This document shows, piece by piece, positions 14,032-62,102 of a stretch of DNA of 64,000 bases (position 1 is the first letter of the stretch; each line of letters opens with the position of its first letter). The translations under genes and the position numbers were made by a program. This DNA is from Takakia lepidozioides (lineage: Eukaryota; Plantae; Bryophyta): assembly GCA_030704615.1 (NCBI GenBank), contig CM060732.1, positions 24,242,001 to 24,306,000 on the forward strand, given 5' to 3'. The notes beneath the pieces are model-generated. The model did no database searches. It was not told the DNA's origin and saw nothing but the letters and a program-made list of their open reading frames with translations.

Positions 14032-14319
14032 CCAACAATACGAGTGTGGCTCTGCATAGATCATGGCCTGCAGCTAGTCATCCCATTACATCCATTGACA
14101 ACCCAAGACACTGATGATCAGGCCAGTGATAGAAGGCACATTTTGTTTGTAAACCTCCCACTGCTAGTCCCTACGGATACAGAATTGTCTTGTTGAGTTG
14201 AATCATTTTTTGTCGCCACTTAGGCCAAATAACAACAGTCCTTGACCTTGTTGTCATTCCACCTCTCATTTGGCACTCTTCTCTTCTCCTCTCCTCTCTT
14301 CTCTCTTCTCTTCTCTTTG

Positions 14320-33739: not shown

Positions 33740-36700
33740 CACTACAACACATGCGCGTTTTTATGACTTCACATATGACTATTTTTTCAGTCTTATATGC
33801 GTTCATGACTACATCACTCTGTAGTGAAAAAAACCTTGTCATAGCGACTAGTCTTTACGACTGCGTTTTGCAAGTCATATCCGTGACTGCTTGCATGGCA
33901 CCTGGAGTCCTGCTGCAGAGAGGGTTGCAGTCACAACTATATGACTAATATATGACTACATTGTCTGTTGAGCGCTGCCTACATGGAGAGGCTTCAGCGG
34001 GACACGTGCGCCACTGCGCAAGCGATACGTCATGCATTCGTCAGGGGATCATATGACTATATGTCTGCAAAGTGATGCCTACATGGAGAGGCGACGGATG
34101 GACACGTGCGCCACTGCGAATTTGACATGTCACGACTTCTTGCCATGATCATATGACTACATGTCTGCACAGTGATGCCTACATGGAGAGGCGCTAGCGA
34201 GACACGTGTGCTATGGCAGATTTCACACGTGGTGACTACATGACTCGCTCATATGACTACAGGGATGTCTACATGGAGAGTTGTTAGCGGGACACCTGTT
34301 GCACTTGAGATGTGACATGTGGCACACAGACAAAATATATGACTAGTATATATGACTACGGATCTTTACACGTGGTGAAAATATGGATAAAGAATGTCGT
34401 GTCATATACTGCCACGTGTTCTGGTTTGAACAAGAGTAATGTCACGTGTCATCAAGATTGTTTTCCGAAATAGTTTATATTTTTAATGTTCATATTTTAT
34501 TTTTTAGTTTTCATTTAATATTTAAAAAAACAGGGAGATTGCAGCCTTGGGTTTTTTTTTAATGGTATTATTTTTAATATTATTATTTAAAATGAAAGTG
34601 AATTAAATGATTTAAAATCTTCATTACATGGTGAAATTCCAACATGAAAACAGAATGGATCCCTCCTGCATACTATCAACCACAAGGAGAATGAAAATAG
34701 TCAACTACAGGGCAATACAAGCCCTATAAATCACATTACAAAAATCCAAATGAGACCAATGTCCCAATGGACACCTCCAAAGCCACAAGGTCAAAAAATC
34801 CATGCCTCAAAAGGCCCAGCCAAAAACAAGCAAGCCCACACATGGGCTGAATTGTTGTAGCTAGTATGTTCTAGTGCTATTAGAATCAAGAACTCTGTTA
34901 AACAGTGCAATAGTGACTATCCCTTCCGCAGCTCCATAAGTTTCAGTAACTTTAGACTCCAAAGTGTTGTCTGGCCAACCACCTGCCCTAACTCGGTCTG
35001 TTTCCTAACACCATTCACATATGGTAGAGGGGTGTTACTGACACATGCCTCTTTGATGTACACACAGGCATAATCAAGGGGCACAGCAGGGTACCCGTAA
35101 CCCACCACAGCACCTTGAAGAGCAACAATCAGCCCTACTCCACATTTCTTGCGTTTGGAGTTCACATCCAACAGCCGAACCTCGTCACCCACCCTGAACT
35201 GTGATCCCAACTCCACACAAAAAAGAACACGATGTGAAAACCCATGACATACACACGACTAGGACACTCAACATTTGCGAATTAAAGAGAGCCCCAAAGT
35301 TGGAAAAATAAAACAAACAAGACAACGGCCTGGACTTACTCCATTTGCAGTCTCCAGTGGTGGTGAGACCTCTTTTGGGGGGCTACTCGCCAGGTCGACA
35401 CTCTTGCCCCTTGTCTGTACCGGCTTGTCGACAATATCACCTTTGTTTGTCACAAGTTCCTGTGTCACAGACCAGAGAACAACCAGGAAAGCAATGAGCA
35501 AACAGGAATAGTGAATAGAAACAAAATCCAAGTATGAATCAAACAAAAAAAGCCAACATGAAAAGCTGCAAAGAAAACCTAGCATTAATCAAGCAACCGA
35601 GGAGAAGCATCCAGGAAAACAATGCAATGAATGAACCCACAAAATTGTAGCCTCTGGAGCACTGTCAGAATGTTTGTACCTTCACAGTAGCAGTGTTGTA
35701 TGGTTGTTGTCCGAAAACAGGCTGAGACTCCAAAAACTTGGGAATACTGGCAGCTTTCGATGCCTTCCACAAGAAAGGCCACAACGCCTCTGTTAGATAC
35801 TCATCAATTGGTGAATCTGGTTGCACCTTCCATGGCTCTGGAAAAATCCCACTGAAGGGAGGATTGTTTGCCGCCTTTCTTGGTGTGTTGTCAACAAGAA
35901 CAGTGTCCTCATAAGTCCATTCTGGCCAGTCTGCCCACACTGTAGACAAGTTCTTGAAATATAATGGCTTTGAATCAGACCCCTTACGGCATGGGAGGAC
36001 TGGATCCTCGTCACAGTGAAGGGCATCCCACTGGAAAACCAGGTTAGTGTGGGCTGCAAAAATATAGTCCACCATTGGGAAGAAGTTGAGAGCTTGGCAA
36101 CAAGACCACACCGCCACCTCAAAGTGTTCAAAACACTTTTGCAAAAAGTCATAACAACGTGGTCTCAAAACTACCATCTTCTTGCCACATCTTCCCCACA
36201 AAACCTTTGGGAAGGGATGCAGGCCCATTAGCAGAATGAAAAGATTCACATAACAGACCATTTAAGTCCAAAATTAGTAAATGCTTCCTCGTTGGTCCAG
36301 GAAGTAAACGACATTTGGCTTCAACATGTGAGCAGGAGAAATTAAAGCAACCTGTTTGTTTGTTTTGTCCCCGTCTGCATCTTCCAGCCAATTTAAACTC
36401 CCACATACCTGCATACCAGAATCCGGTGTGCCCGGCGGCTCTGTCACCATTGCCCCCTGGACTGCTACTGCCTTTGTACGTGGCAAGGGCTGAATTTCCA
36501 CGTGTACCTCACAGCTGGCCTTCCCTGTATCCTGCTGCTGCTCGGTCAAATTCAAAAGATCATCAGTGACAGGAAGACATAAGGGCTTAGAGTGAGCACC
36601 AGTTACCGTCTGAAATTGGGATTCCAAACATTTTGATACTGTCACAGCAGACGTATCCATCGTAGATGTCACTGGTCCTGCGTCTGGTAGATTAATCCCC

Positions 36701-37156
36701 AATCTGGTCACAATGGCTTTCTGGTACTCAATCATACTCTGCATCTGTAATTTTAATTCTGCCATGTCACGTCCTTGTGATTCCACCAGTTTGTCCAAGC
36801 CATCCATCCTGCCAACTACTGTAGAATATGCGAGACTTCCCTCCTGCCAATCCATGAAAACTTGCCCAAGTATGAATCAAACCAAAAAAACCTAGCATGA
36901 ACAACCATTGGAAAGAAAACCCAGGCCAAAAGCCGTGAAAAAAACCCTAGCAACCTATGATGCAGCAACCACTCTAGCAAACGTGGAAAACACACTTACC
37001 CGCCTGTCACTCCCAGCTGACAACCGTGACACTGAACCCTCTTGAATTTCATATAATGTAGGAGGGCACCCTGATAGTGTTTCCTACAAATTAATCCATG
37101 CCACAAACAAACCCATGCCACAAGTCAGTAAGCAATGTGAGGGCTGACTATATACA

Positions 37157-38187
37157 TGTTAGAGGACTGTCGGGGACTTAGACACTTATACGGGATCTGT
37201 AGGGTACCCTTAATTTTTTGCACAGACTGAGACCAACAGGAGCCTTAGGGGTGACAGCAGCGCACTGTAGAGGGGGGTTACACAGCCCGTCACAGTCGTC
37301 ACAGTCGTCACAGTCGTCACAGCCGACACAGCCAACACAGCCCGTCACAGTCGTCACAGCCAACACAGCTCGTCACAGTCGTCACAGCAGACACAGCCGA
37401 CACAGCCCGTCACAGTCGTCACAGCAGACACAATCGTCACAGCCGACACAGCCCGGCACAGCCACACAGCCAGTCACAGCCCGACACAGCCAAACACAGT
37501 CGCACAGCCAGTCACAGCCCGTCACAGTTTCACACAGCCAGTCACCGCTTGACACAGCTGTCACGATCATAGGGAACGAAGAGTAGGACAGGGAACGACT
37601 GTGGGGAACAACACCTGCGAAGGGAACATGTTAGTTCACAGACGACGGTTAGTGAGGGAAACGGTCAGAACCACGGATAGGAAGATCAAGGGAGAAACGG
37701 GGAATTGAGGGATATCATTCGGAGGAGGACTTCTTGGTCATGGAGGAGAGAGGATCGGGCAGAGATGAAGAACGGAAGTGAAGATAGAGAGATGATGAGT
37801 AGATGCTTGATATATGCAAGGCTGTAATGATATTGTAGAGCAGATTAGAGACACAATGGCTTCGGCCTGATACCTGATAAATCATAATCGGATGCTTTTA
37901 CGATACAATCACACTGTGTAGAGAGATCTGAGTGAAGCTGTGAAATGAATGGATGAGTTGATGGAATCCAATAGATTGATAAAGCAAACTGATACTTAAT
38001 TATCAATGGTAAGATAGCTAACATGAATACCAAAAGGGAAACAAATAGGAAACACCCCATGATACACTAGCTGTAGGTCATGACTGATTGTTCTGCGCGG
38101 GCTGAGTACTTAGAGATTTCCAACTCTTCTATCTTGGAGTTTCCGCCTCGAATAGCGAAGGGATGGGTGAGTAAAAGCCGCGCGACA
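37157..38187 (+). repeat. Left LTR of gypsy A, containing a CACAG(T/C)CGT-type tandem array (~37280-37560)
   Basis: TGTTAG...GCGACA, followed by TT and the PBS. Confidence 0.88.
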
Positions 38188-38189
38188 TT

Positions 38190-38207
38190 TGGCGACCATA
38201 CTGGGGA
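38190..38207 (+). other. Primer-binding site of gypsy A (tRNA-Arg-like)
   Basis: TGGCGACCATACTGGGGA two bases after the LTR-terminal CA; resembles the TGGCGACTCCACTGGGGA-type PBS of Tat/Ogre elements. Confidence 0.7.
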
Positions 38208-38964
38208 CCTGAGACATGAACAACCAGATGTGACAGGCATCTGGTGGGATCATGGTGGTTGGACCATTAAAGAATTTGAAGTGAATCAAATTCCCTGTGG
38301 AACGAAGGAAGAAAGATTGTCCAAACAATTCTTTCAAAGGTTTTTGGAATTGCCAACGGTTGTAAAGAAAATATTCTTAAGCGAGTGCATGATGCTGATC
38401 CAGAATGGGGTCTGGAGAAAGGAGTGATAAAGATTTATCAGGTAGCCTGTAGAGGAAGAGCACGTTGGTTACCAACATTGGTTTATGTGATAGCATTGCT
38501 ATCCATTAAACGAGTAGAGTTTGAAGGCTGGGAAGAAAGAAAGGTGAATGTTTATACTCATATGCATGAAGAGCTTGTACTGGTAAAGAATTGGATTCCA
38601 AATGATATTTTGTGGATCAAACTCACACCAAGAACAGCTTTTCAGACTTGTTTGCCATATGGTTATATGGTAACGGAGACTTCAAGTATAGCCAAGGGTG
38701 CATTGAAGCTTGAAAGAACCCAGGCATATACGAGAGATATTACAGAAGAGAGTTTTGGTTATTGCCACATTAAAAGAAATGAAAGACATGGGACATGAGT
38801 GATGAAAGAGAAGCTAGACGACAGAGATATTCAGCAAAAGAGAAAGCTGTCTGAAAGCTAATTATCCATATCTTTGGGAGAGAGGAATAGACATAGGGGA
38901 ATCATCTGGACCTCTCACACCATTAAGATCAAAGAGTACATCACCTATACCGGAAGAACTAGAG

Positions 38965-41440
38965 TTGGATGCCACTCCTTCTGTTTCTTTGCAAGAAAGA
39001 TTAAGGGAATTGGTACAGGAAGAAGATCAATCACGAGGTGAAAGATCTGAGGTACATCCTTGGATAAAAGACTTGACAGAAATCTTTGATAAGAGTTGGC
39101 ATGGAACACCAAAAGCAGGAACTCCAGTTTCTGAAGCAGAAGGTGAAGAAGGAGAAGAGGATGTGGCAGAGCCAACGGAGAGTTCAGACTCTCCAACACC
39201 ATTACAGTTGAGTTACATGAGTGAAGAAGAAACCAAGGGCAGAACTTGGAGGATGAAAACAGAGAGAAGAAATTAGAAGAGGAAGAATATGAAGAAGTAG
39301 ACCCAACAGCTGAGGTTGAGACTACAACCAGGACATCCCAACCCGTTGGACCTGGATCAAGTGGAGCACTTGGATCACAGGCCAACGAAGGTGTCGGCTC
39401 AGGGGGATCAGGCGGGCTGCCTGGATCTGGCTCTGGGGGGACAGGGAGTGTGGGAAGTAGTGCAACTGAAGCTGGGAATACTGTGAATATCGTGGGGCCA
39501 AAAGCAGGGAGTGCTCAAGGGCCACCACTTGGTGGAAGATCCACCACAAAAACAACAGGTCCAGAAGGACCAGCACCAGCAAGGGTGCCAGCACCTGTCA
39601 GTGGGCAGAAGGTAGGGCCACAGATGGCGTTACAACCAACACGGGCAAAACCACCCTTTCCAATATATTCAGGAAAAGGGGATCCCGATGTACACATTAG
39701 CCAATTTGAGCACATGTGTATAGTGAACAATGAGAATGGTGATGATGCCAAGATGAGACTGTTTCCTTGTTCACTTATCAAGAAAGCAAGTGAATGGTAT
39801 GCAAGATTCCCTGATAATCATTTCCTAACCTGGAATGGCTTGAATACAGCATTTCGAAATAGGTTCAGGACAAGTAAAACTGAGGATGAAGTGTATGGAA
39901 GTTTACAACAGCTGAAGCAGAAGAAGCATGAAACTGTTGAAGAGTATATGGAGAAGATGGAATTGATGATGAAAAAGCTGGCTGCAGTACCAGCGCCCAG
40001 TTTACAGAAGACTTGGTTTGTGAGTGGACTAAGACCAGAGTTGCAAAAGAAAGTGGATATGTTACCCCATAATACAGTGGAGGAGGCATTTGAAACTGCG
40101 AACAGAATTGAGCAATTGGGAATGCTCAGGAGAGAGAAAAAAGAAGATGAGGACTTTGAGGATGAGTCAGATGAAGAAGAAGAGCAAGAACTAAAAAGAA
40201 AGAGTAAGAGAAAGGAGAAGTTGAAGAGGGATAACTATGAAAAAAATTTGGAAAAAATCTTGAAGAAGTATGCCACAGAGGCTGCAACACATTGGAGGAA
40301 GGGTGTATGGTGTGCAAAGTGCCAGAATGAAGGCCATACCACCACAGAATGCCACATGAAGGAGAAACACTGTACTATCTGTAAAATGGATAACCATTCT
40401 ACTGAGAATTGTTACTACAACAGAAGGACAGCTGCAAGAGAACCTAGGCAAGTAAGGGTGCATCAGGTGCAGCCCCAGCCAAGAAGAAACAATGATCAGG
40501 ACCACTATGGTAGGTCTGGTGGTTATAACAATGGCATGGAAGGGAGAGGTAATTCAAGAGGGAATTACCAAGGAAATTCCAGAGGCAACTATCAGGGTAA
40601 TCCAAGGGGGAATTACCAGCCCGGGAATCAGGATTATAGAAATAATCCAAGAACAGACCAAGGGCGAGGACCCAATGGTGAAGAGCTATGTTACTATTGT
40701 AATCAGCCAGGACATCGCAAGGCAGCCTGTTCATTCTGGATAAGACACCAGAATGAGATGAGAGCTCCTGTGAATGAGGGCCCAGTGGTGGCAGCTCACA
40801 TGGTTAGGCCATGTGTTGTACCAGAAGTAAGTACAATGATAGTAACAAGAAGTAAAGCCAAACTAATACCTCCAGTAGAAGAGGAAGAAGATGAGAATGG
40901 AAGTGGCAATGATATGCCTGAAGATGAAGAGACTTGGAAAGATGAGAAGGAACTGCACAAGGAAGTGGCAGATACTATAAGGGAAATGCAAAAGAGTACT
41001 GATATTCCTGTGGCAGATTCCTCTGATTCGGATGGAGAAAAGAAGGGAGTGAGGAAGAAAGGAAAAAAGAAGATGCAGACATGCAAAGTAATGAAGAGAC
41101 TTTGGCTGAAGTAATATGCCAGACCAAAGCAGAAATTACCATTGGACAGCTATTAGCTGTGGCACCTTATTGTAGGCACAGGCTGTATCAAGCAATCAAT
41201 CGAATTGCCCAAGAGACAGGAAACACAGACCTGAACAGCAAGGTGACCAGTTATAATGTGAAGCCGGAAGGGCGAGAAACAGTCATGGACTTTGATGATT
41301 TATGCCAGTAATCCAATTGAGAATTGGAAGCACAGAACTAACTGATGTACTGATAGATGGTGGTTCTGGAGTAAATATCATGACAGACCAATTAAGGAAG
41401 AAGCTTGGTCTAAGTAACATGAAACAGCCCCATTTACAGT
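38965..41440 (+). CDS. gag: gag (three CCHC knuckles) and aspartic protease of gypsy A, with frameshifts
   Basis: FPIYSGKGDPDVHISQFE..LFPCSL..ASEWY..LQQLKQKKHETVEEY..FVSGLRPEL; CAKCQNEGHTTTEC, CTICKMDNHSTENC, CYYCNQPGHRKAAC; protease VLIDGGSGVNI near 41350. Confidence 0.88.
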
Positions 41441-41444
41441 AACA

Positions 41445-44400
41445 ATGGCAGATCAAAGAAGTGTACAGCCATTGGGATTAATAAGAGGAGTTAAGATACA
41501 GATACAGAAAATGATCTTTATGATCACAGTAACTGTATTAAAAATGGATGAAGTCATGGAGGCTTACTCCTTATTATTGGGACGTCCGTGGCTGAAACAG
41601 GCCAGGGTATTCTATGACTGGAATTCTCAGTTACTAACCGTGCATAATGGGATACACGAGATACAAATTACCACAAAGAAATCTAGTAGATTACCTGCTA
41701 CAAGAAGACCTCGAGGAGTCAGAGAGTATGACTGGAAAGGAGGACTGGATGAGGAGCAGGAAGCTACCCTATTTGTTGCACACCCAGAGTGGGAGCAGGT
41801 TGCAGAGATGCGGCTGGAAAGCCTAAGTTGTTTAAGAGGTATCTGCTGTGGTGTAGTGACAGCAACACCAACTGAAGAGGAAACCAGCATTTACCCATCA
41901 CATTTCTATGAAGAAAGAGAAGGAGAAATAGAAATCCTAGAAGAACCAGCCACTGTGAGCTTACAGGATGAAGTGGTGACTGGTTGGACAATCACAGCTG
42001 ATGAGCAGGTGAGGGAAGTAAATGTGGGAACTAAAGAGGAACCGAGGATGGTGAAAGTAGGAGCTGATTTGGAGCCGGAATTCTTCGAAGAAGCTAAAAG
42101 CTTGTTCATCAAATACAGAGATGTATTTGCTTGGAGCTATGAGGATCTAAAAGGGATACCACCTGAAGTCTGTCAGCATAAGATTGAACTGGAACCAGGG
42201 TCAGTACCAATCAAGCAGGCGAGGTATAGAATGAATCCCAACTACGCACAGAAGGTTGGAGAAGAGATAAAGAAGTTGGCTGAGGCTAAGTTTATATACC
42301 CAATAGAGTATACAACTTGGTTGTCACCCATTGTTATAGTTCCCAAGAAGAATGGCAAACTAAGAGTATGTGTGAACTATAAGAAGCTGAATGCTTGTAC
42401 GAAGAAAGATCCTTTCCCTTTGCCATTCACAGAAGCAGTATTAGACACTGTGGCAGGCCATGAGATGTACTCATTCATGGATGGCTTCAGTGGTTATAAT
42501 CAAGTGCAAGTGGCAGAAGAAGACCAAGGGAAAACAGCTTTCATCACAGACTGGGGGGCTTATGCATACAAAGTCATGCCCTTTGGACTTTGTAATGCAC
42601 CAGCGACCTTTCAGAGAGTGATAAGTGAAATTTTTCATGAGTATCTGGATGATTTCATGCAGGTATTCTTGGATGATTTCAGTGTGTACAGCTCTAAGAG
42701 TGAGCACTTGCATAAATTGGAGTTATGTTTGGCCAGATGCAGGATGAGAGGTCTGGGCCTGAATCCAGAGAAGTGTACTTTCTGTGTGAACTCAGGGGTG
42801 CTTCTGGGACACATTGTGTGTAAGAAGGGACTCCTTGTGGATCCCAGAAAGACAGAGTCCATTAAAGCCTCTCCACCACCAGTGAATGTTAAAAGTCTAC
42901 GGAGATTCCTTGGGCAAACCAGTTATTACAGGAGATTTGTCAAAAGGTATGCACAAATAGCAGCACCATTGAGCAAACTACTGAAGAAAGATGCAGTGTT
43001 TGCCTGGACAGCTGAATGTCAACAGGCATTTGAGGAACTTACACTGTCAGTAACAACTACACCTGTGCTGATTAACCCTCACTGGCATGTAGTATTCCAT
43101 GTTCACTGCGATGCATCAGGAGAAGCGTTGGGAGCGGTGTTAGCCCAGAATGTTACAGGGAATATAGATTCACCTGTGTACTATGCTAGCCGGTTGATGA
43201 ACAGTGCTGAGAGGAACTATAGCACAACGGAAAGAGAAGCATTGGCAATGATCTATGCAGTGAAGAAATTCAGGCATTACCTGTTGGGCAAGAAGTTTAT
43301 GTTCTATGTGGATCACCAGGCTCTGATATACCTGGTAAACAAACCTCTGATAAGCGGAAGAATAGCAAGATGGTTGATAATCTTGCACGAGTTTGAGTTC
43401 GAGGTTCTTTACAAGCCTGGGAGACTGCATCTTGTGGCAGATCATTTGTCACGATTGTCAATAGGAGAACCAGCCACAGGAATAGATGATCAATTACCAG
43501 ATGCGAGTCTCTTTGCAGTGGAGGTGCAGGGAAGTGCAGATGACTGGTTAGATTGGCAGTGGCCAATCAGATACTACCTTGCTCATGGTCAGTGCCCACC
43601 TAGTTATGGTAAGGAGCAGAGGAAGAGAATCGCTATCAAAACTTTACCTTATACTATGGTAGGAAGCAGAATGTATAAGTTAGGACCTGATGGAGTACTA
43701 AAACGATGCTTGTACCACCATGAAGTAAATAAAGTTTTGGCGGAAGTTCATAAAGGAGTGGCTGGAGGTCATTTTGGAGAAGAGACTACCAGTAGAAAGA
43801 TACTACTCGCAGGATACTGGTGGCCTACTTTGTTCAAAGATGTACACGAGTATTGTCAGAAGTGTGATGAATGTCAGAGGCTAGGACCTTTGCAGAGATC
43901 TGGAAGGATGGCCTTGCATCCTACAATGCCTACGGAACCATTTCAGAAATGGGGACTAGACTTTGTTGGACCAATTAACCCACCATCCAAGAATACACGA
44001 AACAGGTACATAATTACAGCCACTGATTATACTACAAAGTGGGTGGAAGCTAAAGCTTTGAGGGACAACACAGCCAAGTCCACAGCAAGGTTCCTGTACG
44101 AGAACATACTTACACGATTTGGCTGTCCCTTAGAATTTATCAGTGATCAGGGAAGTCACTTCATGAATGAGACCATTGAGTTGTTGACTAAAGAGTTTAT
44201 GATTGTGCATAGAAAGAGTACAACATATTACCCACAGGGTAATGGGCAGGCAGAGGCTACCAACAAAATACTATGTACTATCTTGGCTAAGATAGTCAAT
44301 GCAAACAGAACGGATTGGGATACAAAGCTGCTGACAGCTTTGTGGTCATACATGACTTCATATAAAGTCACCACTAAGTATACACCATTCCAATTAGTTT

Positions 44401-45080
44401 ATGGTATGGAAGCCTTACTTCTAGTGGAATTCCTGTTACCTACCATGAGAACGGAGTGGGGAAAGAGAATGGAATTGCAAGACTCCATCAAGGTCAGGAA
44501 ACATGAATTATACCATGTGGAAGAAGTACGTGCTGATGCAGCTGATAATATGACCAGAATTCAGATGAAGCGAAAGGAACAGTTTGATGAAGGCAAGTTA
44601 AAGACTTTTAAGACGGGGGATTTGGTTCTATGGTTGCAGAAGAAAGGAAAGATTCAAGCTTCTAAGCTTAAATCACCATGGAAAGGACCTTATGTCATAC
44701 AAAAGATGTATGATAACAACACCGCCATGTTACAAACCATTAACAAAGAAATGCTGGGAAGAGTCAATGCCAATAAGTTGAAGGGGTACAGTGGTATCCA
44801 TGACAAACCCTTGCAGCATGATTTGCATGTTGAACCGCAAGAGCAGTCACGGGCTGCACCAGTGTTACGAACGGAGTATGGAGCACTTGTCGCTAGGCCC
44901 AGCATATATGACCAGGGCGGGCAAAACAAACGTGACACAGCCTATCACAGCCCATCAAGGCAAAGCACAATCACAGCCCATCACGACGTGACACAGCCTA
45001 TCATAGCCCATCACGACGTGACACAGCCTATCACAGCCCATCAAGGCAAAACACAGCCATCACAGCCCATCACGACGTGA
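41445..45080 (+). CDS. pol: pol of gypsy A: protease C-terminus, RT, RNase H, integrase (uninterrupted 1211-aa ORF)
   Basis: LLLGRPWL, KDPFPLPF, MDGFSGYNQ, MPFGLCNAPATFQR, VFLDDF, HCDAS, TEREALA, YVDHQAL, HH-CC (HKGVAGGH..CDEC), WGLDFVG, SDQGSHF, QGNGQAE, WKGPY; no chromodomain seen. Confidence 0.97.
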   Translation: MADQRSVQPLGLIRGVKIQIQKMIFMITVTVLKMDEVMEAYSLLLGRPWLKQARVFYDWNSQLLTVHNGIHEIQITTKKSSRLPATRRPRGVREYDWKGGLDEEQEATLFVAHPEWEQVAEMRLESLSCLRGICCGVVTATPTEEETSIYPSHFYEEREGEIEILEEPATVSLQDEVVTGWTITADEQVREVNVGTKEEPRMVKVGADLEPEFFEEAKSLFIKYRDVFAWSYEDLKGIPPEVCQHKIELEPGSVPIKQARYRMNPNYAQKVGEEIKKLAEAKFIYPIEYTTWLSPIVIVPKKNGKLRVCVNYKKLNACTKKDPFPLPFTEAVLDTVAGHEMYSFMDGFSGYNQVQVAEEDQGKTAFITDWGAYAYKVMPFGLCNAPATFQRVISEIFHEYLDDFMQVFLDDFSVYSSKSEHLHKLELCLARCRMRGLGLNPEKCTFCVNSGVLLGHIVCKKGLLVDPRKTESIKASPPPVNVKSLRRFLGQTSYYRRFVKRYAQIAAPLSKLLKKDAVFAWTAECQQAFEELTLSVTTTPVLINPHWHVVFHVHCDASGEALGAVLAQNVTGNIDSPVYYASRLMNSAERNYSTTEREALAMIYAVKKFRHYLLGKKFMFYVDHQALIYLVNKPLISGRIARWLIILHEFEFEVLYKPGRLHLVADHLSRLSIGEPATGIDDQLPDASLFAVEVQGSADDWLDWQWPIRYYLAHGQCPPSYGKEQRKRIAIKTLPYTMVGSRMYKLGPDGVLKRCLYHHEVNKVLAEVHKGVAGGHFGEETTSRKILLAGYWWPTLFKDVHEYCQKCDECQRLGPLQRSGRMALHPTMPTEPFQKWGLDFVGPINPPSKNTRNRYIITATDYTTKWVEAKALRDNTAKSTARFLYENILTRFGCPLEFISDQGSHFMNETIELLTKEFMIVHRKSTTYYPQGNGQAEATNKILCTILAKIVNANRTDWDTKLLTALWSYMTSYKVTTKYTPFQLVYGMEALLLVEFLLPTMRTEWGKRMELQDSIKVRKHELYHVEEVRADAADNMTRIQMKRKEQFDEGKLKTFKTGDLVLWLQKKGKIQASKLKSPWKGPYVIQKMYDNNTAMLQTINKEMLGRVNANKLKGYSGIHDKPLQHDLHVEPQEQSRAAPVLRTEYGALVARPSIYDQGGQNKRDTAYHSPSRQSTITAHHDVTQPIIAHHDVTQPITAHQGKTQPSQPITT

Positions 45081-45290
45081 CAGCCTATCACAGCCCATCA
45101 AAGGAAAGCACAGCCTATCACAGCCCATCAAGGCAAAGCACAGCCTATCACAGCCCAGCACGGCGCAACACAGCCTATCACAACTACCACGGCGTGTCAC
45201 AGCCTATCACACAGCTTCACCACAGTGCATCACAGCCTATCACAGCGTAACACAGTATGACACAGCCTGTCACAGCTCAACACAGCCTAC
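44930..45290 (+). repeat. Internal tandem array (~30-bp unit, CACAGCCTATCACAGCCCATCA...) at the end of pol
   Basis: Directly visible; translated as QPITAHHDVT repeats. Confidence 0.9.
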
Positions 45291-45920
45291 TAAAGTTACA
45301 CGATCCATAGAATCAGTGACAAGTGGACGCATAATAACTTCAGGAAAATGGCTGACGGAAGAGAAACGGAAATTACTTTAAAAATAGACACGTGGAGGTC
45401 AGGGCGCGACACACAGCCGAGAGGAAGTGCAAGAACAGGTGTCAAAAAGAAAGAGGACAAGAACGGCCGTCAAAAGGGATGAAAGGCGGGCCCATTAATG
45501 AATACGGAAAAAGGGAAACGGAACGAACGGCAAGTACAGAAAAGCGGAATTCTTGTCACATGTGTGATCCTAGTGGACTATCCAACAGGGAAAGTCCACT
45601 AAAGAAAATAAAATCTAAAATCCAGTCACAGCGGATACAGCCAATAGAAAACCAGAGAAAGGATCAAGAAAATGGAGGGAAATTGAGCGCAAGAGGCGGC
45701 GTCGTTCTGAGTAACGGGCGTCTCGACGGGACAGACCATCAATGCTATAGCTTGGAAACTATGGAGGAACTAACAGACTATACGCTCGCAATATTACTTA
45801 CGCAGTGGCATAGACACGAAAGGACAGAGCGGAGCTTTTCTCTTGAGCGATGCTTGCAAGCCCCGCAGGCTTACAAGAAATTACCCATAGCTTTCTGCGG
45901 CAACCATACGTTTATGCTTT

Positions 45921-48900
45921 GTGCACTACAGGCATTCCTGCAGTTGTTACAGCCAAAAACAGTTCTGTGAGTCTAAAATGAAGAGAGTGAGAGGAATGGA
46001 GGAAATCAGGGTGAAGAGCACCACAATTCTGCAGAAACAAACAATTGCTACCCCACAGGCGATACAGATACTGGAGGAGCTGAGATTGCAAGGATTGCAA
46101 AGCCTAGATTGGACATTACACCATAGACAGTACATGTTACAATTTTTGCAGAACTTTGAGCCAAGGACAGGAACAACAACGGTGAAGGGAGTTGAATTGA
46201 TGATTACTCCCCTATACCTCCAGCAATTGTTTCGATTGCCAGCAGGTCAGGTGCATGTGGAGGAACACAGGGCAAGACTGCAAATAGGGGACTTATTCCA
46301 AGAAGGGAGTTTCTTTAAAACTCAGGGTTATGCTTGTACCAAGGCTGTGTACCCAGGGCTAAAAGAGGTAGGCCAGGTATTGAACGTTCTGATTGCCATG
46401 AAACAGAACCAACAGTATTTGAGCAGATCCTTCACGGAGGAAATACTCAAAGGCCTGAAGGGACAAGAGGTACAATGGGCGGACATAATGTACAACGCAC
46501 TGGTAGAGGAGATGAAAAGATTACAAGGTACTACCGCAAAGTCTCCTATCATAGTGTCTGGCCCAATCATTGCTCAAATAATCCTTGATTCTGGCATACT
46601 TGATGCGCAAGAAAAAAGGAAATGGGAGTGTTTGAGCCAGAAACAACTGCAATGGAAGAGCAAGGCTCTTCACACAGTGAGGGTGGACTAGCAGGGCAAC
46701 CCGAGACTAAGAGGCAGAGACGGGGAAAGACTGTAGTGGCGGATCCACTGGCTTCACGGATTCCGCATGATAATGTTTCCCAAGCTCATGGCCAGGAAGG
46801 GGCACAGCAGCACAGAGAAATGCTATTACTGGAAGCAGGACCTTCAGAGAGGGAGGAGGAAGTTACTTCTGTATCACAACCATCACAGCCAGCTGATCGA
46901 CTTGTCACAAGGTCACAAGTTATCCATGCAGCTCAACCAGAAATAATTGATTTGGAAAGAGAAGGGTTAGATATTCCAACTACAGAACAGATAGTGGCAG
47001 AAATGGAGAAGGGGGACCTTCTCTATGAATATTCTGGTCTGGTCAAAGAGACAGAGATCCCAGAGGTGCAACAGTTGCCCAAGGGAAATCCTGAGGTGCA
47101 TATAATACACACACCTGTGTCGGAGGTACCACAGGCGGAAGGTCATGACACTGTAGCACCGGTGATAGATGAAGTAGTTCAGGAAGAAAATCCGGTGGGA
47201 CAATGGCCTGAATGGTTCGTGAGACATCACACTGTTGAAGATCAGGAGGAACAGCAGCAACCTCACCATGATGACCCTCAACAGGCAATGCTGATGAGTT
47301 CCATAGGCAGGACACTTAATTTGTTGGGGACTTATGTCAAATCCCATGTTCCAATTACCCAATTGACAGCCTTGAGAGAGGAACTCAGGAAGGAGTTTGA
47401 GGCTCGACTAGCCACTGAGTGTGCAAACAAGGTCGATGAAGAGGTCACTCTCAAGATGCAGCAGGACTTGGGAAATACAGAAATGGCTTTGCAATTGGCC
47501 AAGGAACAATTGATTGAGGCAGGCCTCGCGCAAGACCAGTTGCACGAAGCACATAAGCAACAGCTATACCAAATGCAGGTGCAGCATGAAAGCAAGTTGC
47601 AAGAAGTGAATGCACTACATACGGAGTTGCAGACAGTGCATGACAGGATGGCGATACAATGTGCTACATTCACAACTATGCTTGACCAATCTACAAAAGA
47701 AATAAACAGTCAAGCGGAAAAATGTACGAAGGCAGAAGAAGAGAATGTTGAGCAATGAAGCTCATTGTCGATATGAAGAATACAATCTGTCGCAATGAAG
47801 ATACTTTCAAGCAATACAGGCAGATTGAAGCTGATCAAGAGAAGCACATCGTGGAGTTGCAACAAACCATCATGGCCAATAGAAATGAAATCGCGGTCAA
47901 TAACAAGGCTTGGAAGGAAGCCAATAATCTACTTGCTGCTTATGCGCAATTGGTTGAACCTCAGGCGAAGCGCATGGAGGCTTTACAACAGCAGTTGGAA
48001 TTGTACAAGCTAAGAGAGGAGCAAACTCTCAGGGGAACCACAAGCAACTTGGTGGATAACAGCCTTATGCAGGTCTGGTTAGCACAAGGGCCAGTAGAGG
48101 GCAAAGCCCACGAAAGCTCACCCAAAGCGAGATGAATGAGCTCAGGCTGCAGGTGCAGAACATTGCCACAACTACTATAGACAATGTCTATAGTAGGATA
48201 GCAGAGTTACAAGAGGATGTAGACGGACTGCAGACTCAAGTGGAAGACCTCACTTCAAACATCGACAAAGAGTCTATATCCCTCAGGAACAGCTAATGGC
48301 TTCTTATTTACAAGCCAGAACTTTGGCTTTTCAGTCTTCACAGGAGGTGCAGGAGATGCCAATGATACAAGAGCCAGTACCACCACCACCACACCAAAAG
48401 TCACTGTACCAGTAGCTGAACCTGTGGTTACTACAACCACACCACAGCCACCACAGCCGAAGTATGGGGCAATGCCGCTTTTAACCCACCTAAAACTCCA
48501 GCTGCAAGGGAGTACAGTAGGGCTATGATTATGCCCTTCAACCAAATTCCCATCATGTTGGATTTGGCTTGGAAAGAATTTAGTCCTCCGCAGTCATTCG
48601 CACATTACTACCAAATCATGCGTATTTGGCTGCCAGTGGCAACTAGGACTAAAGTTCTTCCGAACAATCGACATATTGAAGATCATCACTTTGCACAATA
48701 CTGGCACGAGGCAGGTACCATGTTGAGGGATTGATTGCTTTCCAGGTTGTACATGGACTCATTTATACCAAGACCAAGGAGGTAGCAAGTATTGTCATGG
48801 ATGCGGGTTATACTACTACGCTGCTTGTTTTCTGGTATACGTTACCACATTGAGCAACAAAAGATGCAAACACGCTTTCTGAGTTATTCCAGTGGAGATC

Positions 48901-49527
48901 ATTGGGTATTACCTTCGGCCACCTCATATGTACCTATATGACCCAAAAGTTATGATGCAAAAGGATTCTCAAATTCGTTCATGGTTTCAAGCAGCCTGGA
49001 ACCATTTGTCAACACAGAAATTCGGCATTGATGACATTTTCTATAAGGGACATGTGGCATGGAAATACTTGCACGCTGCACCAGTAATTGGTACCCCTCA
49101 CCTGGACAGACAAGGAGCTCAGTGTCTACACCAATTTTGCTGTTCAGCGGTTACACCAAGTTGTAAAATACAAACTTCCAGACATGGTAGGACAGCATTG
49201 TATGCCCCAGATGATTCCACAAAAGTTCGAAAATTAAAACACCTGAGAGGCGATGAGGATTCTGATACAACTGTTTCTTCACCGAATTCTTTTGACATGG
49301 GAGAAGACTATGCAGTTCAGATGGCAGAGAAGAAGCGAAGGGGTCTCCTATGCCGGAAAGGTTACCTCGATATCAGCCTCCAGAGGGCCTCACTTATCCA
49401 GGTAGTGATCAACCATCTCCGTCAACCAGAGACAGACCTCGGGCTCGTACACAGTCCGCCACGAAACTCTCAACGTCAAAAGGTGCTCACTCACAAAGGT
49501 TTGCTAGTCGAAATCAGTAAACCGTGA
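45921..49527 (+). CDS. Extra sense-strand ORF region 3' of pol in gypsy A (plant-transposon-protein-like N-terminus, acidic linker, long coiled coil); fragmented
   Basis: ORFs 45921-46691 (LQFLQNF..TVKGVELMIT..LQQLFRLP..VQWADIMY), 46622-47758, 47755-48135, 48525-48734, 48892-49527; probably one or two genes broken by frameshifts. Confidence 0.65.
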
Positions 49528-49557
49528 GGACACGGCTTTTTGAGGGGGGAAGGGTAA

Positions 49558-50586
49558 TGTTACTCCGGGGTTAGACATTATACGCGGATTTGTCACCCAT
49601 CCCTTAATTTTTCACGAGGCGGAAACTCCCAAGATAGAAAGTTGGAAAAATCTCTAAGTACACACCCCGCGCAGAACAACAGTCATGACCTACACATTGT
49701 ATCATGGGGGTGTTTCCTACACATGTTTCCCTTTTGGTATTCAATGTTAGCACAGCTTACCATTGCTAATTAGTATCAGTTTGCACACATCAATCTATTG
49801 GTTCCATCAACTCTCCTTCAATTTCAGCAGCTTCCCTCACATTCTCTCCTACAACCCAGTGTGATTTTATCGTAAAGTAATCCGATATGATTTATCAGGA
49901 TCAGCCGAAGCATTGTGGTCTCTAATCTGCTCTACATAATCATTACAGCCTTCATATATCAACATCTACTCATCATCTCTCTATCTGTCACTTCCGTTCT
50001 TCATCTCGCCCGATCTTCCCTCTCCTCCATGACCAAGAAGTCCTCCTCCGAATGAATCCCTCAATTCCCAGTTTTCCCTTTATCTTCCTATCCGTGGTTC
50101 TAACCGTTTCCCTCACAACCGTCGTCTGTGAACTAACATGTTCCCTTCGCAGGTATTGTTCCCACAGTCGTTCCCTGTCATACTCTTCGTTCCCTATGAT
50201 CGTGACAGCTGTCAAGCGGTGACTGGCTTGTGCAACTGTGACGGGCTGTGACTGGCTGTGGCGACTGTGTTTGGCTGTGTCGGGCTGTGACTGGCTGTGT
50301 GGCTTGTCGGGCTGTGTCCCGGCTGTGACATTGTGTCTGCTGTGACGACTGTGACGGGCTGTGTCGGCTGTGTCTGCTGTGACGACTGTGCCGTCTGTGG
50401 TTGGCTGTGACGACTGTGACGGGCTGTGTTGGCTGTTGTCGACTGTGACGACTGTGACGGGCTGTGTAACCCCCCTCTACAGTGCGCTGCTGTCACCCCT
50501 AAGCTCCTGTTGGTCCAGTCTGTGCAAAAAACTAAGGGTACCCTACAGATCCCGTATAAGTGTCTAATCCCGACAGTCCTCTAACA
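49558..50586 (-). repeat. Right terminal repeat of gypsy A, inverted relative to the left LTR
   Basis: Follows PPT GAGGGGGGAAGGG. ~49590-50586 is the reverse complement of 37157-~38180 (CTGTGACGA arrays; ..CGACAGTCCTCTAACA end). Confidence 0.9.
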
Positions 50587-52070
50587 ATACACATAGCAAT
50601 TCAATGAGGAACAAATACAGATTGTTGATGATGCCACTTACCAAGCGTGCTTCCACCATTGCCTTCCCACCACGACCAGTCTTGGTAGGATTCAGAATTG
50701 CACCATTTGCCTTCTTCATGTTGCCCGACACTGTGGACACCTCTGTCTGCCAGTAACTTACAAGCTTGTTCCATCCTCGTCAGATACAGTAATGGGTTTC
50801 CCCTTACCACCCAACCACGCAGTGTTTGGCCTTATAACGCTGGCTCTTCATTATTCTGCCATTGTTTGTTTTAGGTGGAAGTCTTTTAAACTTGTGTGGC
50901 GTATATGAAATAGCTTAGCCAGGTGATCTCTGATTTCGTATACAACTTCTCACAGGTTGGTTGTTGATGGCAAGGGAACCATCTAGCTTGCAATAAGCCT
51001 GTCCTTTAGGGCAGCGTGCCATACATTCCGGGTCTGACCATACGGGGCTCCTTTGATATCGTCAAAATCACCGTGGGAGGAAGACCTACAGCTATTCTCC
51101 TTCCTTCACCTTGGCAGCTTCAATTTTGGCTGAGCTATTAGCCCTCCTTAAAGCATGGTTCTATCATTCTTGAAACGACACCCCCCCTCCTCAGAGACCT
51201 CCATGCGCTCAGGAGAATTCAAGCAGGATCCTGCCAAGTAGGGACTGCTGGCCATGGCTGTTGGCCAGAAGGCCGAGGACCATACTGGCCATACTGTCCA
51301 TAAGCACGAGGATATTCCGGTGGCCTGCACCCAATAGCTTTAGGGGTGGCAAATATGGTGGAGGAGGATACTGGCCATACTGCCCATATGGAGGAGCACC
51401 ATATTGACCCTGACCATACTGAGTGCCAGACTGTGGGTACTGAGCATACCAATAATAAGGTGGGGGTACTGGTGGCACAGAACCCACAATGATGGGAGAG
51501 TTAGGGCCACCTCCTGCGTTCTTGTGGGCGCCATCCCATTGCTAGCAGCAGGGATCGTGATCAGTGCGCTTGTGCTTGCCCTAAAAGAAATTCCCCTAGT
51601 ACAATGTGGGTGATTACACATACTATAGGCAGCAAGCAGCAAATCCTTGAATTCAATATAACAAACTGGAAGCACATATCATTTGTAAAGACAAGATTAC
51701 CCAAACTCAGTATGATCTTGGGCAGTAAATCTCCAAATTTGATTGGCCCCAACGATGTCCTCCCAGTACATTTTTGAGCCTCTTAGGTATGTGGTGTTCC
51801 TGAAATCCCATAGCAAGAATCAAATGGACAAACCTGATGGGTCCATGAGAAGTATCCCTCCAAGTTTTACTGATATTCTGGGTGCATAAGTAACCCAAGT
51901 ATCTCTATAAGTAGCCATTGTAGCTTAGTACCAGGACGTTGTTTTCATGGGGCAAAGAATTTGAACACACCTGAAGTCTACTTGGCCTGACATTCATGCC
52001 TTTGGCACTTCAACTTGTCTTGTGGAAATCATTTGTGATTGTGCCTTGGCTGACCCCTGCATTGTCCAAC

Positions 52071-55000
52071 TGTAGTGTGAATGCAGGGGACAGAACATTA
52101 CATATGTTTACCATTACGACCTACATCACTATGACGGAGTGCCCGTCATCCCAAACTGCAGAAAGATGTATCCTTCATGTAGGTAATTTCATGAGCACAC
52201 TGAACTTATGCTTTGCCAGGAGAAAATGGCTAAGTCATGACGGTACACATTTTCATCCATGCGATGAACGTTTTCATCACTGGTTCTTGACCTAAAAGAT
52301 CGCGGGTTGAGAAAAACGAAGAGGAAGATGACGGATGGCTCGTAGCGGCTGTTGTCAAGCAGTGGTGTCGGCAGGGCCCGTGTTAGGAGGTTGTACCTGC
52401 GCGGTGGGATCTTGCTTGGCTTAGGAAGCGGCATTAAGAGGCCTCTGCTTGGTATTCTGTGTAGAAAGAAGCGGTCCGCCTCTCTCGTAGTGATGATCAT
52501 TCCAAGAGATAGAAGCATCTAAGGAAAGCGGCGCACCACCACTGCCGCCAGTGCCTTGAAGATGATAGTTATGGCCGATGAGCAAGCAAGGAAAAGGCCC
52601 GCTGCTGAAAGCACAGTGAAGAGGGTCTGGGCACAATCAATGGGGGGGGAGGTAAAGCATGTGGAGTTCTGGCTGCATGGTATCTCAGGTTCTCTGTCAT
52701 TAAGCTTCTAGCTGCTTTGTGTCTCCTTGTTATAGGACCAGCCAATTTCGAGAGGAAGAATTGCATAGTGTAATCGGTTGTCAGGCCACAGGATGGTCCA
52801 AGTGAAGAAGGGGAGCCATCATGGCGTCATAAGGTCTGGAATCAAGACAAAGAGAAAGGGTTAAGTGGCTGCTGACGGCGATGCAAGGTGCCACCTTGAC
52901 AGGCAGACCCGCCGCTTCACTAGTGGATAAAAAAACAGATAAGTCGATGAACAGAGGCTTCTTTTGGGGAGGACTTAGAAACTGCTTTGGTAGATTTAGG
53001 ACTGCCATCTTGGCAGAAGAGAGAAGGTATTTGGGCAAGGAGAGAGCTGCAAATTCTAAGGGGCTGTTAAGGGGGGGGGGTTTTGGCCAATTTGGCGAGA
53101 TGAGATGAAGAAAACCTGAAAGAAACCAGTGCCCTGCAGACCATGAAGATCTGAGCTGCATCCTCCTAAATCTGTGTCACCACTACAAAAAAGGGATTTC
53201 CGACCTGTCACTGCTCAAGTGGGCTTCACATAAAGGATCGTGTTTTACCGCTGCCATTGGGCTGATTTGCATCACTGAATACATCGCACCAGCATAGCTG
53301 GTGCTGTACCTGCTGATAGGGGATGTTGTGTAAAAGGTAGAACCAAGCAGTGAACAACAAATTGACTCCCCATCCATGTCTTTCCCTTCCGCTGCGGCGT
53401 GGATGAGGATTGCTTGAACTCTGATCACGAGGAGGCTGAGGGAAACCCCAGCCAAGTGACGACAGTTTGGACAGATTAGAAGAAGAACGCTTCTTTCCTC
53501 TTGCTCCGCAATCAATGGAGGGGAGCACAATTAGAATTATACAGAAGGGGATTCACGCCCCTTCTTTTGGTATCAGAGCTACGTTGTTAAATCTTGATTT
53601 CTACTAGCTAGGGATCTTGACTGGTATTGGATGGTTTGATGGCAGGAAGAGACCACACACTGATTCCTGATGAACCAAGCATTGGAGATTGCTGATTTGC
53701 TTCAGCAGACGCACACCAAATGCAACACCAGACCCTTGTTTGTACTTCTTCACCCTGCTTGGAGAATAGCGAATGGTGATTTATGTCTTAGAGTAGACAT
53801 ACTGGTGGAAGAACAACATAGCACTTTGGATAAGAGAGTTAGGAAGGTGGTGAAGATAAATACCATGGCACGAGAGGTGACATGGGAGGTAGAGTAGAGA
53901 TGTTGGCGAAATGGACAGTGGGAGTGGTATAGAGGTCAACATTAAGGGAGTTGCGGGAAATTAGAGTCAGAATAGGTGTTGGAAACAATTTGAACTTTGA
54001 CTAGAGAATAGAAGGATGACCAGTCCAACCAGCATAGATGCGCCTTATCATGGTAGGAATATGAGGATGTAAATGACTGGCTGGAGAGGATTCAGATGTA
54101 GGCAGATGTCAGATTTGAATGAGGACAAAACTTTCAAGGTAGCAAGGCTCAACCTGAGAGCCGGCTGATGAATGGTACCGTAAACAAAACCTAGACCAAC
54201 ACTGGGTGGACTTTAGGGCAGCAATTTCAGCCAAGTTTGGTAATCGTTGACTTGGCAGAAATTAGGCTAAGATGGATACCATTAAACAGGAGAGTAGACA
54301 AAGGTTCAAACATCTTCGATAGGTGAACCGGTTATTTATAAAGAAGTGGGCGTCTGATTTGGAACAGAGGCGTAGATTTGCAGCAGGTTTGAGACCAAAT
54401 AGCAAGAGTAATTCTGGGCAGGCGCTTCCCATTGATGTAGAGGAAGCACTGGACACAGCCATTGAGATTGAAAGGGGCCTGGGAAAGTTAGGGGAAATAC
54501 CTCTAGAGCCCATTGGAAGGAGATGATACAGATGAGTCAGTTGTGTTTTGTTACCCTGTGGACAGAAGACTCTGATCATCTGAACACTACCCTCAGAAGT
54601 ACTTTGATAGGGGACCAGTCATAGGAGAAAGCTCGGGATCTAGAACACCACCTCGTGTTCGCCTTTGTATGTTTGTCACAACGAAGGTCACATAGCTTCA
54701 TATTGTCCTGAAGGAAGAAGACCCAGCTAAGTGTGACAATGTCACCGTTCGGCATTCCATCCACGGAACTGTGTGGTGTGAGATGCACTTTGCAAGCTAC
54801 TCGGGCACACGGAGAGTGAGTGCGGTCGAAAACTCGACACCATGATGGGAACTCCGGGAACTAACTTTGTAGATGTGTTCTATGTGATGAGGATGATGTA
54901 CTCACAGAGATGACAGATCTGATGTCACGAAATAGTATCAATGAAGTCAGACTTCCACGCATACCTGTCCAGAGTCCGATTGTTGAACCTATAGGGTCAC

Positions 55001-61000: not shown

Positions 61001-62102
61001 GGGCGATGGCAAGGTGCCACCTTGACAGGCAGACCCGCCGCTTCACTAGTGGATAAAAACAGATAAGTCGATGAAAAGAAGGCTTCTTTTTGGTTAGGAC
61101 TTAGAACTTGCTTTGGTAGATTTAGGACTGCCATCTTGGCAGAAAAAAGAAGGTAGAGATGTGACAAGAAAAAGTTTTGGAAATGGGAATGGAGACTCTG
61201 GACTTCAGACCAGAACGTGGAAAGGATGGATGCACCTGATGTTGTGATGACAATGAGAGAAATAAGTGAAGAGAGAGAGAAAGAGAGGGCCTGTTCGTCA
61301 CTGAATTCAGAATGGTCACTGTTGTCTTCATTCTTGCATTTTGATTCAGTGTCATAAACCTGGACACCATGCTGCCGTGTGTAGTGATAACCTGGAACCA
61401 ATGTAGATCTGGCTTGTTTGTTTGGAGAGATCACTGATAGTTAGCTGGAGTTGCAAAAAAAGAAAACATGGAAAGGATAAGGTGATTTCACTATGGGATC
61501 AGGATCTGAACAACTGCATTCCACAGTTGAAGGGAAAAGAGGGATGTTGGGGTATTTGGGTTGAAGTCTGACAAAAAAAGATGAGAGCTATTTGAGCGAT
61601 GGGTCATTGAAAAGGGACAAGAGAGAGAGAAAGAGAGAGAGACTGTTGGATGGGATGGTTGTGTCTTGAGAGACCGAGGATGACTTCAAGGCTGGCCGCA
61701 CTGGATGCCTAGCAGCGTGTGCATTCACATTACATGACAGATCTGCTGCTATGAAATAGTTGGGGAACCTGGGGACATAAACCAGATAGTGAAACAGACA
61801 AAAAGGGAAAGGAAAGAGAGAGAGAGAGTGAAAAATGGGATTTGGGCAAGGAGAGAGCTGCAAATTCTAAGGGGCTGTTGGGTGGGGGTTTTGGCCAATT
61901 TGGGGAGATGAGATGAAGAAAACCTGAAAGAAACCAGTGCCCCTGCAGACCATGAAGATCTGAGCTGCCTCCTCCTAAATCTGTGTCACCACTACAAAAA
62001 GGGGATTTCCGACCTGTCACTGCTCAAGTGGGCTTCACACAAAGGATCGTGTTTACCGCTGCCATTGGGCTGATTTGCATCACTGAATACATCGCACCAG
62101 CA
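52071..62102 (+). mobile_element. Ty3/gypsy element B with direct LTRs; degenerate gag/protease, RT-RH-INT; 3' LTR truncated
   Basis: LTRs 52071-~53565 and 60186-62102 (both start TGTAGTGTGAATGCAGGGG); tRNA-iMet PBS TGGTATCAGAGC 53568-53579; protease IDTGA ~55390; PPT-like AAAAAGGGAG ~60164-60173. Confidence 0.92.
56414..60055 (+). CDS. pol: pol of gypsy B (RT, RNase H, long insert, integrase), split by frameshifts
   Basis: RFCGDFRPVN, ALDLQSGFWQI, MPFGLKNATATFQR, FVDDV, LDVDWS, EGECYAL, TDHKPL, HEATGH..CGKC, IDHFSKW, TDNGTEW, QCNGMVER, WEGPY. Confidence 0.93.

Follow-up and report, generated by a model that had tools for sequence, protein, structure and literature searches.

A Ty3/gypsy element of Takakia lepidozioides with an inverted 3′ long terminal repeat and a 5-bp target-site duplication: most likely a rare aberrant copy of an ordinary high-copy family

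Ty3/gypsy (Metaviridae) retrotransposons of bryophytes have a common layout, with gag, a pol region encoding reverse transcriptase (RT), RNase H and a DDE integrase, a tRNA-type primer-binding site (PBS), a polypurine tract (PPT), long terminal repeats (LTRs) of about 1–1.5 kb that contain tandem repeats, a long region downstream of pol, and a 5-bp target-site duplication (TSD). We analysed a stretch of 64,000 nucleotides from the bryophyte Takakia lepidozioides (GenBank assembly GCA_030704615.1, contig CM060732.1, positions 24,242,001–24,306,000 of the forward strand; hereafter the window, to which all coordinates refer), which carries an insertion of ~13.4 kb with all of these components. 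It is unlike its relatives at its right end: their LTRs are direct, whereas this copy has an inverted 3′ LTR of another sequence variant.

Inverted terminal repeats are known from the DIRS elements, such as DIRS-1 of Dictyostelium, which use a tyrosine recombinase and make no TSD (PMC7192593, PMC3950715). The Takakia element is similar to these in having inverted terminal repeats and a terminus-like segment (here called a′) by its right repeat, which superficially resembles the DIRS internal complementary region. Unlike DIRS elements, however, it encodes a DDE integrase and carries a PBS, a PPT and a 5-bp TSD; a recombinase open reading frame (ORF) is absent, and no tyrosine recombinase was detected by Pfam in any ORF of at least 100 amino acids. 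Inverted LTR arrangements also arise in aberrant retroviral and retrotransposon reverse transcription and integration, as self-primed or fold-back strong-stop DNA, as autointegration circles with one inverted LTR, and in the concerted integration in vitro of two like ends, showing that integrases accept two identical ends. These laboratory forms are dead-end or in-vitro products, whereas the Takakia copy is a chromosomal insertion with a TSD. To our knowledge, molecules with a unique 3′ (U3) terminus at both ends are known solely as such products, and the literature searched, a limited set of papers that makes this weak evidence, yielded no gypsy element described as combining inverted LTRs with a TSD.

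The features of the insertion that bear on its origin were as follows.

37157–50586: the whole insertion, a Ty3/gypsy element of 13,430 bp
37152–37156, unstranded: left TSD copy, ATACA, read directly
37157–38187, plus strand: 5′ LTR, 1031 bp, TG...CA, the common variant of the family
37811: sole TATA-like motif of the 5′ LTR
38190–38207, plus strand: PBS of tRNA type, starting TGG (TGGCGACCATACTGGGGA), 2 bases past the left LTR
39246–41114, plus strand: gag ORF, 622 amino acids, with the Pfam families Retrotrans_gag (3e-13), Ty3_capsid (1e-7) and zf-CCHC
41445–45080, plus strand: pol ORF, 1211 amino acids with no interruption, with RT, RNase H, zinc-binding and DDE integrase core domains
49542–49554, plus strand: PPT, just 5′ of the right repeat
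49558–49623, plus strand: segment a′, the inner ~66 nucleotides of the right repeat, a direct but diverged copy of the LTR start, overlapped by a match to the reverse-complemented LTR end
49558–50586, minus strand: right terminal repeat, 1029 bp, a complete LTR of the other sequence variant, inverted, with its U3 start facing outward
50587–50591, unstranded: right TSD copy, ATACA, read directly; the match of a contig from public run X5 begins exactly here

Both termini of the element are U3 starts, TGTTAGAGG... on the left and ...CCTCTAACA on the right (TGTTAG... and ...CTAACA, of the TG...CA type), with ATACA on each side, whereas a direct 3′ LTR would finish ...GCGCGACA before ATACA. Self-comparison with blastn revealed no split or permuted direct terminal repeats in the element, its ends being joined by the inverted pair alone. 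The pol domains were placed by Pfam at amino acids 299–457 (RVT_1), 521–650 (RNase H), 760–812 (Integrase_H2C2) and 830–930 (rve), and the integrase catalytic residues D (GLDF), D (ATDY) and E (GQAE) lined up with those of relatives. No aspartic protease family was found by Pfam in gag or pol, and the bryophyte relatives also list none; the window was found to contain no tRNA gene with which the PBS could be paired. With a gag containing capsid and zinc-knuckle domains, the RT–RNase H–integrase order, a DDE integrase, a PBS, a PPT, TG...CA termini and a 5-bp TSD, the family is Ty3/gypsy. The studied copy is an aberrant member, its repeats being inverted and 5–13% apart instead of direct and identical at insertion. 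A first-pass annotation of the window, made from the letters alone, had described an integrase-encoding Ty3/gypsy element with inverted ~1-kb terminal repeats, a PBS after the left repeat, a PPT before the right one, ATACA on both sides, and the same U3-type end at both outer limits. This description was borne out in full: self-comparison, MAFFT and blastn agreed on the repeats, the PBS is of the type found in the closest relative (L001, below), and the purine tract, the domains and catalytic residues, the termini and the TSD copies were located as listed.

The left (37157–38187) and right (49558–50586) repeats are reverse complements of each other, and self-comparison yielded 15 inverted pairs. 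MAFFT aligned them with 901 matches, 89 mismatches and 80 gap columns, and blastn gave 89.8% identity over 1040 columns. A gap-tolerant alignment contained 31 mismatches versus 51 gap openings, so that small indels dominate the differences, as had been noticed at first pass. The divergence is not even along the repeat. The outer part (first 682 columns, ~680 bp) had 11 mismatches and 23 gap openings, or 5.0%, and the inner part (remaining 358 columns, ~350 bp) had 20 mismatches and 28 gap openings, or 13.4%; the likelihood change-point fell at left-LTR positions 37806–37832, beside the TATA-like motif. Read in its own orientation, the right repeat begins with the U3 start as in the left LTR, reaches to ~5 nucleotides short of the LTR end and then continues for ~25 extra nucleotides, as a result of which its last ~66 nucleotides resemble the LTR start read directly. 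This segment, a′, scored 47 in local alignment with the LTR start (shuffles 13.5±2.5) and 50 with the reverse complement of the canonical LTR end (shuffles about 13.5), in agreement with the earlier description of the letters after the PPT as a mosaic of the LTR start and the inverted LTR end. For the right repeat, the duplex of its 3′ end with the U3 start was predicted at −31.3 kcal/mol (z −9.5), versus −9.0 kcal/mol (z +0.6) for the left-LTR end and the U3 start, which have no such complementarity. Thus the right repeat is a full LTR unit with long terminal inverted ends, set exactly between the PPT and the TSD.

A retroelement-like unit next to the insertion, in the same window, served as a control for the decay of repeats.

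52071–53029 and 60186–61155: control repeats of the neighbouring unit, direct, LTR-like, 96.4% identical

All of the ORFs between the control repeats were fragmented (293, 662 and 201 amino acids). Since the terminal repeats of the gypsy element are 5–13% apart with gag and pol intact, while the neighbour with repeats 3.6% apart has broken ORFs, decay after insertion cannot explain the difference between the repeats. Judged by these sequence comparisons, the two repeats are not sister copies. The control pair was itself indel-rich (16 mismatches and 17 gap openings), indicating that this pattern is not specific to the locus, and many indel states of the right copy, for example those at 50526 and 50260, were common to a large share of the family contigs. 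The first-pass annotation had read the indel richness as a warning of an artefact; the pattern is indeed present, and it also occurs in a direct pair elsewhere in the window.

The family was examined in public sequencing runs, eight of which (from five studies) contained parts of the stretch 47000–52400; four runs from three studies (X1, X3, X5 and X6) were aligned to that stretch of 5,401 letters. The run data are short Logan contigs and the depths are summed contig depths, which are not copy numbers, and only contrasts of 20- to 1000-fold were used. About half of the sampled 31-mers of 47000–52400 were present in the best run. In X5, the internal region and the outer 500 bp of the right repeat had 20–40 times the depth of the flank, and in X1 and X3 the depth over the same internal region and outer right repeat was hundreds of times that of single contigs, showing that the family is abundant. 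At position 49554, 54 X3 contigs and two X5 contigs diverged into the canonical LTR start (TGTTAGAGGACTGT...), showing that in most copies the PPT is followed by an ordinary direct LTR start, of which ~26 nucleotides are visible. The loose-end contigs of these other copies matched the left-LTR sequence, the left LTR thus being the common variant. By contrast, the most diverged part of the right repeat (bin 49715–49895) had depths of only 32.6, 292, 26.5 and 8.95 in the four runs, versus about 20,000, 800,000, 700 and 200 in the adjoining bins, showing that the inner variant is rare, at about the single-copy level. In X5, the match of one contig (record 21, 1563 nucleotides, depth 41) started exactly at 50587 and was preceded by 1253 other letters; judged by its letters, this contig fits an empty site or an insertion-free paralogue. 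No contig of the four runs carried the window's private flank letters at the listed flank positions. These runs are therefore without the exact locus, and the junctions are neither confirmed nor refuted by them.

The relatives of the element also had direct LTRs. The best protein matches came from bryophytes (Riccia sorocarpa and Marchantia polymorpha, 42–49% identical) and environmental contigs, and none exceeded about 60% identity. The closest relative found was L001, a metagenome contig from ENA, with a pol 48% identical (48% over 92% against the protein P0001) and a gag region 32% identical to gag. It is laid out as gag, pol and ~4 kb of further ORFs, with a PBS of the same type after the 5′ LTR; its LTRs, of about 1.5 kb (1–1566 and 11781–13257), are direct, and it contains no inverted repeats. 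Among 80 metagenome loci with relatives at 40–60% identity, ~10 distinct elements had detectable repeats flanking pol, all of them direct, and none of these ~10 had an inverted pair only; counted with L001, 11 elements among the nearest relatives showed terminal repeats, and every one had direct LTRs. No further copies of the family were found in exact-pattern or protein scans of metagenome contigs, which returned just the 40–60% relatives, or in two viral-contig scans.

Most likely, then, the studied copy is genuine and aberrant, the only one of its kind or one of very few in an otherwise ordinary, high-copy gypsy family, and not a new architecture. As to how it arose, we regard as probable, with modest confidence, an aberrant product of reverse transcription that had a U3 terminus at both ends and was inserted normally by the integrase. 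The anatomy, the two U3 ends with their TSD, the non-sister repeats, the abundance of the family and the direct LTRs of its relatives are observed; the reverse-transcription route is what we infer. The DNA that integrated would have had a normal 5′ LTR and, right after the PPT, a complete reversed LTR instead of a direct 3′ LTR. The route would involve no steps but known ones. Plus-strand synthesis would begin at the PPT, and the growing strand (or a plus-strand strong-stop DNA, by its 3′ end) would pair with another plus-sense LTR DNA, a free plus-strand strong-stop, via the ~66 nucleotides over which the LTR start is complementary to the inner end of the donor LTR. Extension would then run off at the 5′ end of the donor LTR, which is the exact U3 start. 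The donor would be a U3–R–U5 unit (R, repeat; U5, unique 5′) of the other variant, probably derived from another, non-identical RNA of the family packaged in the same particle, because the inverted LTR differs in variant from the left LTR. The DDE integrase would process and join the two like ends as usual, giving the 5-bp duplication. An autointegration circle was considered as the source and rejected, as such a circle would not be found within host DNA with U3 at both of its ends.

Several points weigh against this account. Neither 49558–49620 nor 50586/50587 was seen bridged by reads or contigs of the assembled individual, and, with the private flank letters missing from all four runs, the locus is without independent validation. 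The direct LTR after the PPT in other copies is visible for about 26 nucleotides only. One particle with two RNAs does not easily explain three variants (the left LTR, a′ and the inverted LTR). Moreover, a′ is ~20% off the canonical start, which a fresh template switch would not give; this divergence would fit only if that end were native to the donor LTR. Nevertheless, of the options raised at first pass, a template-switch product that still integrated is the one we favour, whereas an undescribed LTR-retroelement architecture, offered together with it, is opposed by the abundance of the family, the direct LTR start in its other copies, the near single-copy level of the inner variant and the direct LTRs of the relatives.

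A DNA rearrangement after insertion, in which deletion, inversion, gene conversion or template switching during replication reshaped a normal element, or a pair of close insertions facing opposite ways, would also place an inverted LTR at the right end, and we consider it unlikely. That the repeats are different variants is what two insertions would give, and a deletion could have been mediated by a′ together with the right repeat's inner end, the two being similar direct or inverted sequences; the putative host intron is unconstrained, so that a small loss of spacer would pass unnoticed, and the X5 contig cannot discriminate. The right outer end, however, is an exact U3 terminus abutting the same ATACA as the left end, and the chance that two independent insertions match at 5 bp is about 1 in 1000. 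Neither recombination between inverted LTRs nor recombination within the inverted ends of the repeat can put the U3 start outside, and an inversion in place would leave the U5 end beside the TSD. The precise flip of the element's own 3′ LTR that had been proposed at first pass is disfavoured: the repeats, 5–13% apart with intact ORFs, are not sisters, and a flip through the short inverted ends of the repeat could not bring the U3 start to the TSD. A flip via recombination between the repeat's own inverted ends was likewise rejected, because the outer parts would stay put. We also discarded a second, minus-strand element with the right repeat as its 5′ LTR, since there is no PBS on that side, the internal ORFs are all on the plus strand, and other copies join the internal region to the PPT and the LTR start.

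It is quite improbable, in our view, that the inverted repeat is an artefact of assembly or polishing and that the real 3′ LTR is direct. The exact locus is in no public run, the 31-mers of its right part being incompletely represented even in the best one; all of the listed flank variants are unsupported, and the differences between the repeats are mostly 1-bp indels, all of which speak for an artefact. Against this, mis-joins at repeat overlaps preserve strand and cannot set an inverted LTR after the PPT, and a chimeric read would have to break precisely at the PPT and at the TSD, with the contig running on into the same flank. A foldback chimeric read in particular was rejected, as the junction is not palindromic about one point. 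The consensus is of good quality, judging from the long ORFs (1211 amino acids in the element and 603 amino acids elsewhere in the window), and an ordinary direct LTR pair is likewise indel-rich, with many of the right-copy indel states common in family contigs.

Least probable of all, and hardly to be expected, is a propagating gypsy sub-lineage with inverted terminal repeats, in which a′ would act like the DIRS internal complementary region, the U3 part would be regenerated in every cycle and the inner parts would be inherited separately: the abrupt rise in divergence close to where the U3/R boundary is predicted, an a′ as diverged as the adjoining inner part (as in separately inherited segments) and the intact gag and pol would suit it, but the inner variant is at about single-copy depth in four runs, the relatives and most family copies are ordinary, there is no tyrosine recombinase, and no route for strand transfer is available, since the 3′ part of the sense transcript would have the same sense as the minus-strand strong-stop DNA.

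If real, as its structure suggests, the insertion is a natural record that reverse transcription of an LTR retrotransposon can yield full-length DNA with an inverted 3′ LTR, and that a molecule ending in U3 on both sides can be inserted by a gypsy integrase with the usual duplication of the target. Standing alone, this copy is a curiosity of moderate interest, not a new class. Its orientation may nevertheless have consequences for expression. The promoter of the right LTR would aim into the element, giving convergent LTR promoters, and sense read-through or host-gene transcripts across the insertion would carry complementary LTRs; it is a reasonable expectation that these could form double-stranded RNA and give small RNAs against the family. 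Such hairpin transcripts could seed silencing of a very abundant family. A parallel is Mu killer in maize, a partial and inverted duplicate of MuDR by which the family is silenced. The two are alike in being rearranged copies of active families whose transcripts could form a long hairpin, whereas Mu killer derives from a DNA transposon and has a different origin, and their likeness in effect is a hypothesis. A bolder proposal is that DNA with U3 at both ends is produced and integrated time and again in this family, or that a small sub-lineage propagates, owing to the ~66-nucleotide complementarity in some variants, with the copies acting as natural silencing triggers; we rate this as improbable.

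The remaining features of the element lie within the LTRs and downstream of the integrase domain.

37281–37560: tandem repeats in the 5′ LTR, 9–10-bp CACAGCC-type units
44906–45297, plus strand: internal tandem array of CACAGCC-type 10-bp units, resembling those of the LTR
45392–49527, plus strand: post-pol region, 4.1 kb, with successive ORFs of 192, 256, 378, 126 and 211 amino acids in shifting frames and no Pfam family

Units of 9–10 bp (CACAGCC/GTCGTCACA) therefore form one array in the U3 part of the LTR (37281–37560, and 50210–50470 in the right repeat) and a second at the end of the pol ORF. The post-pol ORF series is probably a degenerate third ORF of the family. It showed a weak match to the region after pol in L001 (22% over 163 amino acids) and a protein-atlas lead to a plant cluster with Transposase_28, with a score of only 0.89; no homologues were found of the last ORF before the PPT. 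At position 47753, all X5 and X6 contigs and one third of the X1 contig depth had an extra A. This site is the exact junction of the ORFs 46622–47758 and 47755–48135, indicating that the post-pol ORF is continuous there in other copies and is frameshifted in the studied copy and many others. At 48462, 22 X3 contigs and two X6 contigs joined CACAGCC-type units directly to that position; from these contig sequences, many family copies seem to be without the stretch from the internal tandem array to 48462, i.e. most of the post-pol ORF region. Other breakpoints common to many contigs were at 48108 and 49340.

Two repeat structures were noted in the metagenome relatives. One locus, L068, contained a palindromic pair upstream of pol (2839–3763 and 3920–4836, ~930 bp, head-to-head, 75% identical), which was considered as the LTRs of an element and rejected; with more copies at 12930–13737 and about 21250–21700, it looks like a dispersed repeat. 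In L001, a long array of ~109-bp units occupied 13200–16000, downstream of the 3′ LTR, each unit with a tRNA-like T-arm motif (GGATTGAACCC...), and by its sequence it may be a short interspersed nuclear element or a tRNA-derived satellite.

In the surroundings of the insertion, where the first-pass annotation had proposed that the flanks rejoin into a short intron of a CACTA gene, the minus-strand ORF 35665–36261 of the left flank encodes an NLI-interacting-factor-like (FCP1/NIF) phosphatase domain (Pfam NIF, 8.6e-14), the sole domain that Pfam identified in that flank; no Pfam families were found in the neighbouring flank ORFs. The neighbouring retroelement-like unit has a further repeat pair at 53026–53294 and 61837–62102. 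On the right, the minus strand shows a GT donor at about 50649.

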